57,121 nt of DNA from Macrostomum lignano (taxonomy: Eukaryota), in contig NIVC01004167.1 of NCBI GenBank assembly GCA_002269645.1, forward strand, positions 1 through 57,121, in the 5' to 3' direction. The translations under genes and the position numbers were made by a program. Below the pieces are notes generated by a model, which was not told the DNA's origin, ran no database searches, and was given only the letters and a program-made list of their open reading frames with translations. Every line of letters begins with the position of its first letter. The first letter of the stretch is position 1. Shown piece by piece: positions 19,101 through 32,908 of this stretch.

Positions 19101-22100
19101 CAACAATTAAGCTCAAAGGAGTTCCAGTTGTCATGTATACGAGCTAGAGCCTTAATTGTAAGGAGCAGATTGAGCGTTGATTTGTTTCGGACTCAGAGGG
19201 CTTTTCCCCAGTGGGATAGTAGAGAAACAGGCATCTTATTTCAACTTACATGTAATTCTCTCAATGGAAGTCTCCCTGAGGCTGAGTGAGACTGCTAGAG
19301 ATAGAGATTTGGGACTAAAGCTGGCGCCGCCCTTCAGAGCAATTGAAGTACTTTACCCCTAAAAGGCTTTCAACAAACCCCAGATACCTACCGGACGCGT
19401 CCATTGGACCGCCCAGCTGGCCGGAAGGCTTCAAGAAGTCGGCCACGCTAAGATCCGCAGTCCAAGACACCTCCGGCGGCAGCAACAGCAGCGGCAGCGG
19501 AGGCCAGGAGTTGCAGCATCATCTGGGCTGGTCGAGGCACAGCAATTGGCAGGCGCACATCCCGGACCAGCTGACCAAAGCGCGGAATGATAGAGCTGCA
19601 GCGCTGGCCGAAACTCGCAATCTGCTCATCGCCGCTCAGCAACTGCTCACGGCTCGTTCAGCCGCCACTTCCGCCGTCGCTTTCGAAGAGCTCCAGCTGC
19701 CTAGCAAGACGGAGAAACCGAAGTCGAGCATGCTCAATTCGCTAATAAACAAATTCCAACGGGTTCGGACGTTCAGCCAGGAACGAAACGAAGGCGGCGG
19801 CGGTGGCCCAGCCCAGTCGACGTCCCAGCAGCAAACGGCGGGAGCCGATCAGGACGACGAAGAGATGATCTACACGACGCTGGACGATTCGCTGGCCAAT
19901 GTCGAGAAGGACAACTCGTCGAACCGGGCTATCGATGGGGACGATAAAGAGCAGACCTACGAGACGCCAGACGATCATTCTCTCCCAACGCCGCCGCCGC
20001 CTCCTGCTGTTCCAGCAAAGCCACTGAAGCCACAGAAGGGCCTCGTGACGCCTGAGATGCTCAGCAGCCGGCAGCTCCGGCCGACTCCGCCGATACCGGC
20101 GCCGCGAGGCCGATCCGACGATAGCGGCGACACCAACGGCAAACCCGAAATTACCGAGGGCGGAGAAGCACTGCGTCAGCGGAAGCCGTCCTTGAGCCCG
20201 ACGCCCACACCGCGGCTCCCCGCTACCATTGAGGGCTCCCTCAAGGACCAGCTACTTGCTGGCGCCGCTGTGGACGCCAGCGTGAGCTACTTTTACCAGG
20301 CGTTCAACTGCAAACCGCTGCTGCAGGATGCTGTCAGGCAAGTCTGCGGTGCTTTGATTTCAGACAGAAATTTCACGAGTTCATTGGAATATTAGTCCCA
20401 CTTTCTTCTTTCATTAGTTTAACCAAGTACCAGACAATGAGCCTCAATCGGGCACAGAGTAAGTTATCGCGTCTCACTCTCTCGCGCTAAAGCACGAGCT
20501 ATGCAGGTTCGCTTCCGTTCGCTGTCACATTTATTTGGGGCTCGTGCGATTCACACCAGCGAGGGGCCAACCCCCACCCCAAAGACACAGAGTACATGCA
20601 GGGCTGATGTACACTCACAAGTGAGCGTGGGCCTGTAGGCTTCCAAAAAATATTTTTAGACACAAAAAATGCATGCTAACTACGAGCTACATTTGATCAC
20701 TGCAATTAGTCATTTGTAAATGAAAGGCTTGCTAGCGAGTAAGGCGTGAGGGGTCGCTTTCACAAGCTCAAAATTTCATATCGTCGAAAAGCCTTCTTGA
20801 TTAAATTCATAATCTCGAAAACCAATAATAAAACATAAACTCGGAAGCGATTAGCCATGAAAATTTCCATTACTGTTTCATATTGGCTTGAAAAAACCGA
20901 TTTGAATCTTATGATTTTTCGAGCTTGTGACATTTCAAGCTTGTAGAAGATTCCCTCTTTTGACGATGTGAAACTCCCTGCAGCGTTAGGTGGGTTGACT
21001 CAGCCAATGAGCGTAAAGCTTCGGAAAATTGCTGGGTTATTTATAGCACGGAGCAAAGCAAAGTACATTCGTGAGCTCCATTATGCTTCCAGCCAATAGG
21101 AGCTAAGCTATCGAGGGGAATCCCAGGTTATTTAGAGAAATGCGCCAGGCTCCAGAAGTTCCATTCTTCTAAGCCTAGCCTGTAAGGATTTCAACCGTAT
21201 TTATTCATTTTACCCGCATCTAGCGAGTTGGAGGCGGCTCCCGCCGGAAGCTTCGTGGTGCACGGCGGCTCCAGCGGCCGCGGCGGCGGGCAACTTCGTC
21301 TGCTGACTCTGCTAGTTAGGTCTGCTGACCCGGTGCATTCCGTCTGCCGGTACACTATCAAGGAGACAACAACCAACGGAGTTCAGATTGCCGGCTCCCT
21401 GGGCTCGGCCAGTCACGCAAGCGTCAACCAGCTGCTGTACTATTATCACATTCACGACCTGCCCATCTGCAAAGATCACCCGGAAACCGTGATTAAGCTG
21501 GTTCGTCCGCTGCACTTGTCCCGGTGAGTGAGAATATTAATATCCATATCCATATATATACCCATATCTAAACGAGCTCTTATCTCCCTAAACATGATTC
21601 GTATTTCTCTCTCACACAGGCAAACGAGTTTTCTAAGCGCATCAATCTGGTGCCTCGGTGACAAGCCCCTGTGTCTAAGGTGAGTGAGAACTACAAATTC
21701 ATTGGCTATACCTTGCTCTGAGTTACTCACATCACCCCTGCTCAAATTATTGCAGTCTGCTGACAGGGGCTCAGGAAGGCACATTTGCTCTGCTTGTGGA
21801 TCAGCAGACCAAGCAGCTATCATTATACGCAACGGCGACAGACAAGCAGATGACGGTGAAAATGCGCATTAACACCGATGGCAAGGTACAAGTGAGACGC
21901 TTGGGGGTTACTCAACTTAAACCTAATAAGCTTATTCTAGCAGCCACCCCACTCCCAACCGCCTATTCTAGCACCCACCTCACTCCCAACCGCCTATTCT
22001 AGCACCCACCTCACTCCCTCCTGCCCATTCTAGCACCCACCTCACTCCCTGCTGCCCATTCTAGCACCCACCTCACTCCCTGCTGCCCATTCTAGCACCC

Positions 22101-31600: not shown

Positions 31601-32908
31601 TGCTGAGCTTTCAAGCAACCACCAGGGCTCTCCTTTCCCCCCCCGTTCCACTTTCTCACGCCTACACGGGTTGGGCCGACCTCAAGCCCACTACTGTATT
31701 GCTATTGGCTGGCTACTGTGCGTGTTGGTCGGCTGAAGCTTATCGGTTTTCTAATTGGTTGATTAGGCCGGCACGTGATATTGACTTGTAGCTGGTCGAT
31801 ATCCTACTTAATCAGTCAAAATTTTCCGTTGCAGAATCAATTCTACTTGGCTAACTCTGGTCCTTCCGGCATCGTCAAGTACGACTCGCTGGAGGATCTG
31901 CTGGTCAGTTTGCACAGCTCCAGATTCCCAGTTACCGTGTCCAAGAATAAAATTTTGACGACTCTGCAGACGCCGTATCAGAACTCTAAGTCAGTTGCTA
32001 GATTTGATGGAGTTTTGTCACCTTAACTTGGTCTCGTGTTTATTTCGATGTAAGTACATTCACTTCTATCCATTTTAGAGCCTGCAAAGCCAAGCAACAA
32101 TCGCTGCTGCTCGACCCGCTGAGGCAGCGGATTTTTCACCGCGGCCAGGAAGATCAAGCCGTCAGGGCGCTGCGACTGCCCAGCACTCAGAGTGGCGCTT
32201 TCGTTGTGTGGCTCACCTCCGCCACTGAGGTCTCTCTGATGGTGCGCGGCCAGGGACAGCGAGTTCTCAGCTTCAAAGTTGTCTGCACACCTACCGGATG
32301 CCGGGCCCTGCCGGAGGTGGGGGCTGGGGATGCTGGGGTGTTGATGAATGGGATGTTGGGGTAATGGAAGGGGATGCTGGGTAATTCATGGAGATGATCC
32401 TGGGGTAATGATGGAGGAGATGTTGGCTGTTGCTGGAGATGATCATGGGATGAGATAATTGATGAAAGGAATTGTTAGGGTGTTAATGGAGGGGGAGTTG
32501 CTGAAATCCTGCGGCTTGTTGGAGTTGCTCAGATGCTTTAAGCCAAAGGTCATAGGGGACGCTGATTTCTTAGGCTAGATAGCTGGCTTTTAAGGCAGAT
32601 GACTTTCCTTAGGATACTAACACTAGCGACTGTACAAGGTCAGAACCTACATGTAGTTTGTTTAACAGTTTCTCTTTTTCTTTGTTGCGTCCCCAACAGG
32701 GGGGCGCAGGTTGCTAGTCCACTATACTAAAAATAACTTATCTTAAAAAAAACTGTGATTTCAGCGCGCTGTTTACCTGGAGAAATTACCCGAACTGAAA
32801 TTCGACAGCATCGAGTCTCTGGTTGCACACCTGCAGTGCAATCCAGACTTGCTGATGCCGGAGCTGCCAGGCAGGCTGACACAGCCAATCAGCTGCCGAA
32901 ATCTGTGA
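25653..32908 (+). CDS. Paralogue B: SH3BP2-like PH + Pro-rich linker + three SH2-like domains, ~632 aa. Exons 25653-25695, 26392-26499, 26603-26702, 29822-30442, 30555-30845, 31311-31376, 31448-31580, 31835-31989, 32079-32316, 32765-32908
   Basis: All introns are GT-AG with the same phases as paralogue A. PH exon WAVLQSDCLLLFDSSISRSCSEAIYLSGF resembles SH3BP2 ([22 protein letters not shown], from memory); GYICR is shared with A. SH2-like motifs: DPGTFLLA...FDTLEQLVFHYHLHP; QGTYSLR...YVLSVR...YDSLEDLL; SGAFVVW...FDSIESLVAHL. Confidence 0.8.
26082..26353 (+). mobile_element. ~300-bp dispersed repeat, copy 2
   Basis: Shares AAAGAATCACGTGACACAATTTGTTATCAGTGCA and the terminal ATCATACTACTG with copy 1. 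Confidence 0.6.
26885..28620 (-). pseudogene. Decayed Ty3/Gypsy LTR-retrotransposon internal fragment (gag, zinc knuckle, aspartic protease, N-half of RT) in intron 3 of paralogue B
   Basis: - strand from ATG at 28504: MANFISLPLPEPF...WAAWSSRFDDF (gag, with in-frame stops); a CxxCxxxxH knuckle near 28070; protease VLVEGDPLDMMVDSGAICNIM (27623-27991); RT PWVSRMVVVPKSSGGVRMCKDLR...AIPTLDEV...LFSELDICKAFYQ. Truncated; no LTRs recognised. Confidence 0.88.
28650..29705. repeat. 29-bp minisatellite (CTGACCTACATTCTCGACCCATTAGTCCT), ~36 copies; one orphan unit at 26858-26884
   Basis: TACATTC at 28681 and 28710 (period 29). Confidence 0.95.
30864..31268. repeat. (GATA)n microsatellite, ~100 units, intron 5 of paralogue B
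   Basis: Near-perfect AGAT run. Confidence 0.99.

Follow-up and report, generated by a model that had tools for sequence, protein, structure and literature searches.

A putative triple-SH2 adaptor family with graded loss of the phosphotyrosine-binding arginine, found so far in the flatworm Macrostomum lignano

The SH2 domains are the textbook readers of phosphotyrosine (pTyr), and the arginine of their FLVR strand, at position betaB5, is almost never lost. The human SH2 domains without this Arg are just those of RIN2 and TYK2, with His in its place, and of SH2D5, with Trp; the peptide-binding cleft of the TYK2 domain can persist without pTyr, and in the C-terminal SH2 domain (C-SH2) of p120RasGAP the pTyr is coordinated by a betaD4 Arg and a betaD6 Lys without the FLVR Arg (PMC7530234). 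Consecutive SH2 domains with short linkers are found in Syk/ZAP-70, SHP2, PLCgamma and p85, in the Spt6 tandem the C-terminal domain has no canonical phospho-pocket and is packed on the N-terminal one, and in SH3BP2 (3BP2) one C-terminal SH2 domain follows an N-terminal PH domain and a linker with PxxP and acidic Tyr motifs. The locus described here is a window (the whole stretch of DNA analysed) of 57,121 nucleotides, assigned by a protein search match to contig NIVC01004167.1 of assembly GCA_002269645.1 of the free-living flatworm Macrostomum lignano. It holds two tandem plus-strand paralogues, genes A and B, with a common architecture of a PH-like domain, an acidic-Tyr/PxxP linker and three consecutive SH2-like domains (A1 to A3 and B1 to B3). 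Four or five of these six domains lack the FLVR Arg, which is highly unusual and far from chance, given that only three human SH2 domains are without it.

As a whole, the results are best explained by a triple-SH2 adaptor family with six paralogue groups (A to F), in which the FLVR Arg would have been lost stepwise while the folded Arg-less domains would have been kept for pTyr-independent or weakened binding; the probability of this explanation is estimated at roughly 0.6. The domains are referred to below as SH2-1, SH2-2 and SH2-3 in order from the N-terminus, and the coordinates of genes, domains and motifs are collected in Table 1.

The gene models were built from splice junctions read base by base. 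The spliced translation of gene B was identical in every residue to the deposited protein BOX15_Mlig002108g2 (P0001), the gene called at 25653-32908. Gene A is absent from the called genes on record for contig NIVC01004167.1, and an indexed protein search with its tri-SH2 region as query returned no protein. Proteins near-identical to it exist in UniProt only, the model agreeing in 713 of 719 residues (99%) with A0A1I8FWC5 (P0003), a protein derived from a different copy or assembly. Another UniProt entry, A0A1I8GKD5 (P0010), is a fused model in which the upstream SRSF1-like gene is joined to gene A. The introns of gene A are GT-AG with the sole exception of intron 4, which is best read as GC-AG (CAG/GCAAGT ... 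TCTAG/C; 20332-20338, 21223-21228), its position and phase then matching the gene B intron; in the UniProt models the donor is a GT 5 bases further upstream and the acceptor an AG 4 bases further downstream, with the loss of 'VSE' from the alphaA helix of A1. Throughout the SH2 region the intron positions and phases of A and B match, at an identity of 22-23%, and the two genes are evidently old tandem duplicates. The limits 21224 and 32908 chosen in an earlier note on this DNA turned out to be landmarks of these models, namely the acceptor of the gene A exon with the A1 betaB strand and the last base of the gene B stop codon. In UniProt and NCBI the proteins are named just 'SH2 domain-containing' or 'hypothetical' and are uncharacterised, and no protein with three SH2 domains was found in the literature searched.

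The domains of A and B are SH2-fold homologues, as the earlier note had proposed. Unspliced exon translations gave zero SH2 matches in Pfam; spliced models were needed because introns split the domains. With the spliced proteins, A2 matched Pfam SH2 (PF00017) at E=0.0064 and 17.0 bits, under the 21-bit cut-off, B gave no match, and GTYSLR of B2 was aligned on GTFLLR of the SOCS4 SH2 domain at a sub-threshold E=0.025. Profile searches of the PDB gave a clear answer: the six-domain profile matched 183 sequences, and all 60 among the matches listed were SH2 proteins, including SHP2, p85, Src, Vav2 and PLCgamma1 at E ~1e-6 (best 8e-7). The family profile of SH2-2 matched the SH2 domains of Vav2, p85 and PLCgamma1 at E ~1e-6 and that of SH2-1 matched SH3BP2, Src and Abl at 3.5e-4 to 1e-3, while paralogue E cleared the Pfam SH2 cut-off (30.3 vs 21 bits). 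AlphaFold2 models of the tri-SH2 regions, built on six-sequence alignments, scored a predicted local distance difference test (pLDDT) of 69.8 and a predicted template modelling score (pTM) of 0.66 for B and a pLDDT of 66.2 for A, with three alpha-beta-beta-beta-...-alpha units in the B model and two clear ones in the A model. The order of alphaA, an antiparallel betaB-betaC-betaD sheet and alphaB was seen in A1, A2, B1, B2 and B3, with a pLDDT of 72-90 across most of A1, 73-85 in A2 and 80-87 in B2, whose predicted betaB is TYSLRA. By Foldseek both models matched tandem SH2 structures of PLCgamma, SHP2 and Syk over ~190-420 columns at E 1e-8 to 1e-9.

For SH2-3 the family profile found no significant match in the PDB. 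Its SH2 nature is indicated by an hhalign match to SH2-2, extending from betaD to alphaB only (probability 68.6%, E 4.6e-5, 45 columns), by the match of B3 to a hidden Markov model (HMM) of SH2-1, SH2-2 and reference SH2 domains (34.3 bits, model positions 5-91 of 110, with W on the FLVR Arg), and by the AlphaFold2 topology of B3, which is alphaA-betaB-betaC-betaD-...-alphaB at a pLDDT of 60-75 with AFVVW as betaB. Alignment of A3 to SH2 profiles is confined to its C-terminal half, from betaD to alphaB (EIEFESMDKLLMY).

The FLVR register could be fixed in five of the six domains. In HMMER alignments with solved SH2 domains the G-x-F-x-x-X motif of the window domains falls on G-[ST]-[FY]-L-[VI]-R of the FLVR strand, and the eight peptide strings listed in the earlier note were all found, once each, on the plus strand and at the expected places. 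Two further methods, MAFFT L-INS-i and hmmalign with Src, Vav2, SHP2-C, SH3BP2 and SOCS4 as references, agreed on the betaB5 residue of A1 (His), A2 (Leu), B1 (Ala), B2 (Arg) and B3 (Trp). The betaB strands predicted by AlphaFold2 cover the hexamers (TFLLA at residues 44-48, TYSLRA at 163-168 and AFVVW at 291-295 of the B model; SFVVHGG at 42-48 and TFALLV at 162-167 of the A model), betaB5 being the fifth residue of the strand, and the register of A1, A2, B1 and B3 is anchored by GVYMLR and GTYALR, which occupy the same columns in paralogues. Judged by these alignments and predicted strands, the replacement of the Arg appears firm in four domains (A1, A2, B1 and B3), A3 is ambiguous between Ser and Arg, and B2 alone in the window has a canonical FLVR Arg. 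The claim that five of the six domains had lost the Arg stands in this slightly reduced form; the four losses were upheld in the alignments to reference SH2 domains. The Arg of the B3 string SLMVRG, which had been placed in betaC, does indeed end the predicted betaC strand (model residues 301-306).

An exhaustive HMMER search of 1.84 billion (1.84e9) representative proteins with the A/B profile at E<=1e-3 produced seven proteins, all of them from M. lignano, and no non-Macrostomum protein. They represent the six paralogue groups: a counterpart of gene A, a copy of B, C (P0004 and P0006), D (P0005), E (P0007) and F (P0008). The family is so far confined to M. lignano among the proteins searched; an indexed search with the family alignment returned B and its copy alone, the rest of the family coming from the exhaustive search. 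The state of the FLVR position in the family alignment is graded. In SH2-1 the Arg is present in D, E and F (GVYMLRG) and replaced in A (His), B (Ala) and C (Val), in SH2-2 it is present in B, D, E and F (GTYxLR) and replaced in A (Leu) and C (Val), and in SH2-3 it is present in none (Ser in A, Trp in B, Glu in C, His in D and Leu in F). In the neighbour-joining tree (B,(A,C)) is separated from (D,(E,F)), and the branches of the A/B/C clade are the longer ones. Pairwise identity among A, B and C is just 21-35%, so that the duplications must be old. As D, E and F keep the Arg in both SH2-1 and SH2-2, this alignment marks its losses in A, B and C as derived, and in the simplest history it would have been lost from SH2-1 on the A/B/C stem and from SH2-2 on the A/C stem. 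In SH2-3 the Arg was probably missing from the outset, or else disappeared ahead of the diversification of the family. The idea that B might be the sole pTyr reader holds inside the window, where only B2 is canonical, and fails for the family, given the two Arg-bearing domains of D, E and F. The available model of paralogue D (UniProt A0A1I8GWQ2; 2139 aa) is seemingly fused to an unrelated retroelement-like sequence, and its linker contains at residues ~900-1160 about 25 near-perfect 'PPKLPPSSTE(S/T)QP(P/L)L' repeats, which together could offer SH3 or WW domains a very large array of binding sites.

The ancestral form of the family would have been a two-headed pTyr-reading module, made of SH2-1 and SH2-2, with a phospho-blind third SH2 domain. 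The paralogues D, E and F, with an Arg in both of the first two domains and basic residues at alphaA2, betaD4 and betaD6 of SH2-2, would fit such a two-headed reader, and by sequence they keep the two Arg-bearing SH2 domains of the tandem-SH2 bivalent readers. The difference from Syk/ZAP-70, SHP2, PLCgamma and p85 lies in the third SH2-like domain of A and B, in the absence of a catalytic domain, and in the distribution of the Arg, which is missing from both SH2-1 and SH2-2 of A and present only in SH2-2 of B. In the fast-evolving A/B/C branch the SH2-1 Arg would have been lost throughout and the SH2-2 Arg in A and C as well, leaving gene B with at most one probable pTyr-reading domain, B2, and gene A with no canonical reader. 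The Arg-less domains may have been kept to bind partners in a pTyr-independent or a weakened, non-canonical manner and to maintain the cohesion of the three-domain module, and SH2-3, because no member has the Arg there, is most likely a structural or non-phospho interaction module. Recruitment and output would proceed via the PH-like domain and the Tyr and PxxP motifs of the linker.

For the N-terminal part of this scheme, Pfam PH matched gene B at E=0.21, under the cut-off, and an N-terminal profile of four paralogues gave six weak matches in the PDB, five of which were PH-domain chains: PKC nu/PKD3 (2d9z, E=0.014) was the best, followed by IPCEF1, beta-spectrin, SKAP55 and KIAA0053 at E 0.5-0.9. 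The linkers contain acidic Tyr motifs (DDEEMIYTTLDD and DDKEQTYETPDD in A, DEDHYEIPD in C) with PxxP runs alongside. From this architecture we infer that the family proteins may be adaptors of tyrosine-kinase pathways. Domains in the same order occur in SH3BP2, whose SH2 domain (2cr4, E=3.5e-4) was also the top PDB match of the SH2-1 family profile. However, SH3BP2 has one SH2 domain where A and B have three SH2-like domains, the FLVR Arg of SH2-1 is gone in both A and B, and the match was barely ahead of Src and Abl (8e-4 to 1e-3), so that orthology is not demonstrable; the PH evidence is weak.

The replacements at betaB5 have parallels in the human exceptions, A1 and D3 having His as TYK2 and RIN2 do and B3 having Trp as SH2D5 does. 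In contrast to these proteins, several domains of one protein are affected here, Leu and Ala are used too, and there are no FERM-kinase, RIN or PTB parts; TYK2, RIN2 and SH2D5 were not among the PDB matches listed for the family profiles, which gave no evidence of orthology. The earlier note had taken the Arg-less domains for pseudo-SH2 scaffolds working independently of pTyr. One half of this proposal is supported, since the FLVR Arg is gone from A1, A2, B1 and B3 while the fold is kept, and the other half is qualified, under the condition for refutation that the note itself had set, by the Lys and Arg that stay at secondary positions of several pockets. As assigned by alignment alone, the residues at alphaA2, betaD4 and betaD6 are K, K and R in SH2-2 of D and E; K and R at betaD4 and betaD6 in F2, which is without alphaA; K, K and V in B2; K, T and K in A2; R, K and P in C2; L, R and T in A1; E, C and S in B1; and Q or E (the methods differ), S and K in B3. 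Among the Arg-less domains in the window, B1 (E, A, C, S) is the single one in which alphaA2, betaB5, betaD4 and betaD6 are all non-basic.

These residues, together with the example of p120RasGAP C-SH2, make residual binding of phospho- or acidic ligands by the Arg-less domains possible. In its full form, an alternative explanation holds that the Arg-less domains are non-canonical readers that recognise pTyr, or a different phospho- or acidic residue, by means of basic residues elsewhere, which we consider unlikely but by no means negligible. It would make use of the betaD4 Arg of A1 next to a betaB5 His of the kind present in TYK2 and RIN2, of the two Lys of A2, of the alphaA2 Arg and betaD4 Lys of C2 and of the betaD6 Lys of B3, and it would suit the fact that the pocket-bearing SH2-1 and SH2-2 are the best-conserved domains between A and C. 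It also has precedents in p120RasGAP C-SH2 and in the Glu-binding SH2 domains of JAK/TYK2 (PMC7530234). The likeness to p120RasGAP C-SH2 ('FLVR-unique') extends to the betaD4 Arg of A1 and the betaD6 Lys of A2, and ends at betaB5, where an Arg is present but sequestered in that domain and replaced in A1 and A2. Against such a reading, B1 and C1 are without a basic residue at any of the four positions, the betaB7 Ser is gone even from the Arg-bearing paralogues, the betaB5 replacements are mostly hydrophobic (Leu, Val, Ala, Trp) and would fill or flatten the pocket, and the pocket positions are known from alignment alone.

The terminal position of an Arg-less SH2-3 in all paralogues, beside a better-conserved SH2 domain, recalls the Spt6 tandem, and an invariant L-x-x-P-x-Q stretch lies at the junction of SH2-2 and SH2-3; the pTM of 0.66 for the B model hints at a packed tri-SH2 module. 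The family sequences differ from Spt6 in being of the classical Src/Vav type, with a single sub-cut-off match to Pfam SH2_2 (17.5 bits), in paralogue E only. A further elaboration, in which the three SH2 domains would form a supramodule with SH2-3 as a structural or regulatory cap that was phospho-blind from the start, and in which A, B and C, their remaining SH2 domains turned into pTyr-independent binders, would act in flatworm tyrosine-kinase signalling as pseudo-reader antagonists or as rewired scaffolds of the canonical D, E and F adaptors, is speculative and in our estimate rather improbable.

We regard it as quite improbable that A and B are merely redundant duplicates of a recently polyploid genome drifting to pseudogenes, with the Arg lost by neutral decay. 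Such drift would agree with the long branches of the A/B/C clade and the loss of key residues, with the lack of a gene A call in the NCBI record, with the unrecognisable N-terminal half of A3, with a frame break in one copy of paralogue C and with the fact that no expression evidence was found in the literature searched. However, the open frames and consensus splice sites across all ten exons of A and B are intact despite a very old divergence, and conservation extends to the core motifs of the SH2 domains and to the intron phases. Between A and C the identity, taken over the longer sequence, is 36-38% for SH2-1 and SH2-2, 28% for SH2-3 and 20% for the linker, which makes the two domains that are Arg-less in both proteins the best-conserved regions; furthermore, of the 14 columns that are invariant across the family alignment, 10 fall in SH2-2 and its C-terminal L-x-x-P-x-Q stretch. 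The A-B and A-C synonymous sites are saturated at 22-35% protein identity. For paralogue C, a comparison of the SH2 exons of two genomic copies, at loci L003 and L004, gave 4.5 nonsynonymous changes in 600 sites and 6.5 synonymous ones in 180, or 0.0075 per nonsynonymous site (dN) and 0.037 per synonymous site (dS); the sample is small, and the neutral expectation is ~8.5 to 2.5. A search for a second copy of gene A at another locus, beside another SRSF1 copy (L002), gave repeat matches only. The conservation of SH2-1 and SH2-2, the dN below dS and the intact frames and splice sites argue against simple decay, and several results suggest that the Arg-less SH2-1 and SH2-2 are not decaying and that their fold is still constrained, in line with the earlier expectation of a fold conserved despite the Arg loss.

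A number of observations weigh against the preferred explanation of stepwise Arg loss in a triple-SH2 adaptor family. Several Arg-less domains of the window keep basic pocket residues (the betaD4 Arg of A1, the alphaA2 and betaD6 Lys of A2 and the betaD6 Lys of B3). The dN/dS estimate is based on 11 substitutions, in a paralogue rather than in the genes of the window, and the L004 copy (contig NIVC01003325.1) has a one-base frame break at ~3100-3102 in the C linker exon, either an assembly indel or a sign of a decaying copy, and a truncated annotated protein (P0013, 379 aa). The PH assignment is weak, with E=0.014 as its best value, no paper in the literature searched names these genes or Macrostomum SH2 adaptors, and the one-species range may partly reflect a strict E-value in a very large library and the sparse public macrostomid genomes. 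Finally, the N-terminal half of A3 was unaligned by the HMM and had a pLDDT below 50 at AlphaFold2 residues 260-311, and its betaB5 residue is Ser in the paralogue alignment, unaligned by hmmalign and Arg by L-INS-i, in which GSACVR is placed on FLVR, exactly the alternative register (GSACVRTE) that the earlier note had considered as restoring an Arg.

The possibility that the degenerate domains mainly bind membrane lipid, mentioned previously as an alternative, is very improbable: many SH2 domains carry cationic lipid-binding patches and a PH-like domain in the same protein makes a membrane context plausible, but no result of the analysis points to lipid binding and the alphaA region of B SH2-1 is strongly acidic (EPEADEDT). 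Nor does any result bear on the decoy role that the earlier note had suggested for A. It is just as hard to credit that the Arg loss is an alignment artefact with an Arg or Lys at a true betaB5 elsewhere, which is a live option for A3, whose N-terminal half is neither modelled nor aligned, but is contradicted for A1, A2, B1 and B3 by the concurrence of HMMER alignments to solved SH2 domains, L-INS-i, hmmalign and predicted strands and by the Arg-bearing paralogue motifs in the same columns.

Table 1. Positions of genes A and B, their predicted domains and the betaB-region motifs in the window.
Feature	Position	Strand	Details
Gene A	16111-23354	+	10 exons, 746 aa, stop included
Gene A exons	16111-16168, 17890-18033, 18118-18217, 19384-20337, 21224-21523, 21620-21679, 21756-21885, 22346-22497, 22578-22812, 23247-23354	+	splice-site reading
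Gene A PH-like domain	17922-19582	+	aa 31-167, spans two introns; paralogous to gene B exon (tblastx)
Gene A linker	19583-20272	+	acidic Tyr motifs DDEEMIY264TTLDD, DDKEQTY293ETPDD; PxxP motifs LPTPPPPPAVPAKPLKP, RPTPPIPAPR; read from translation
A1 (SH2-like domain 1)	20273-21521	+	aa 398-518; betaB5 codon 21261-21263 CAC = His
A1 motif GSFVVH	21246-21263	+	string match
A2 (SH2-like domain 2)	21624-22495	+	aa 521-632; betaB5 codon 21793-21795 CTT = Leu
A2 motif GTFALL	21778-21795	+	string match
A3 (SH2-like domain 3, very divergent)	22496-23351	+	aa 633-746; candidate betaB5 Ser, 22675-22677 AGC, or Arg, 22705-22707 CGC, in the other register
A3 motif GSLVVS	22660-22677	+	string match
A3 motif GSACVRTE	22690-22713	+	string match
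Gene B	25653-32908	+	10 exons, 632 aa, stop included; BOX15_Mlig002108g2
Gene B exons	25653-25695, 26392-26499, 26603-26702, 29822-30442, 30555-30845, 31311-31376, 31448-31580, 31835-31989, 32079-32316, 32765-32908	+	splice-site reading
Gene B PH-like domain	26430-29975	+	aa 28-135, spans two introns
Gene B Pro-rich linker	29976-30368	+	SRPPPPPVP, LPPPPPPVPPPQP; Tyr185 and Tyr241; read from translation
B1 (SH2-like domain 1)	30369-30831	+	aa 267-383; betaB5 codon 30592-30594 GCT = Ala; predicted betaB TFLLA
B1 motif GTFLLA	30577-30594	+	string match
B2 (SH2-like domain 2)	31315-31987	+	aa 390-505; betaB5 codon 31485-31487 CGA = Arg
B2 motif GTYSLR	31470-31487	+	string match
B3 (SH2-like domain 3)	31988-32905	+	aa 506-632; betaB5 codon 32209-32211 TGG = Trp
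B3 motif GAFVVW	32194-32211	+	string match
B3 motif SLMVRG	32233-32250	+	string match

The window as a whole has the character of animal genomic DNA, with short interrupted reading frames, abundant minisatellites, collagen triple-helix exons and an SRSF1-like RRM exon. The latter is located upstream of gene A on the plus strand (13058-13537; RRM_1, E=3e-12) and includes a Gly/Arg-rich stretch. The collagen triple-helix exons are large and lie on the minus strand at 41669-42418, 43689-45074 and ~45586-46304, in a region of 60% G+C; they match Pfam Collagen at E 1e-28 to 1e-48, and one frame near 41.7 kb includes a stretch resembling a collagen IV NC1 motif. An open frame at 37359-38051 on the minus strand with a reverse-transcriptase-like 'RYIDDIF' is probably a retroelement fragment and had no Pfam match at E<=1e-3. 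Within and between the two genes the tandem repeats include a 31-mer minisatellite (x10.6) in the gene A intron splitting SH2-2 (21934-22264), an 11-mer (x133) between A and B (23688-25177), a 29-mer (x36) in intron 3 of gene B (28651-29706) and, in the intron of gene B that separates SH2-1 from SH2-2, (AGAT)x101 (30864-31269). The first part of the window (1-12000) shows strong strand asymmetry, with a GC skew of -0.33 to -0.62 and repeated C/T-rich units, copies of which, 81-95% identical, occur on contig NIVC01001873.1. Two copies of a dispersed repeat ('ESRDTICYQC...') were located at 22957-23115 in a gene A intron and at 26095-26304 upstream of the PH exon of gene B; a tblastx match between A and B ('LLSVQGQNVH / LATVQGQNLH'), considered as a candidate exon, was rejected as a part of this repeat, which is also present at 26095-26304.

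The value of the family is limited by its narrow taxonomic range and by the rapid evolution of its genes, and the functions proposed here rest on sequence. Within one species, however, the paralogues would form a stepwise series, from D, E and F with two canonical domains through B with one to A and C with none, in which the SH2 fold appears to be kept throughout. Such a natural series may serve for asking what the SH2 fold does after pTyr reading ends and whether the secondary basic residues of the pocket can substitute for the lost arginine.

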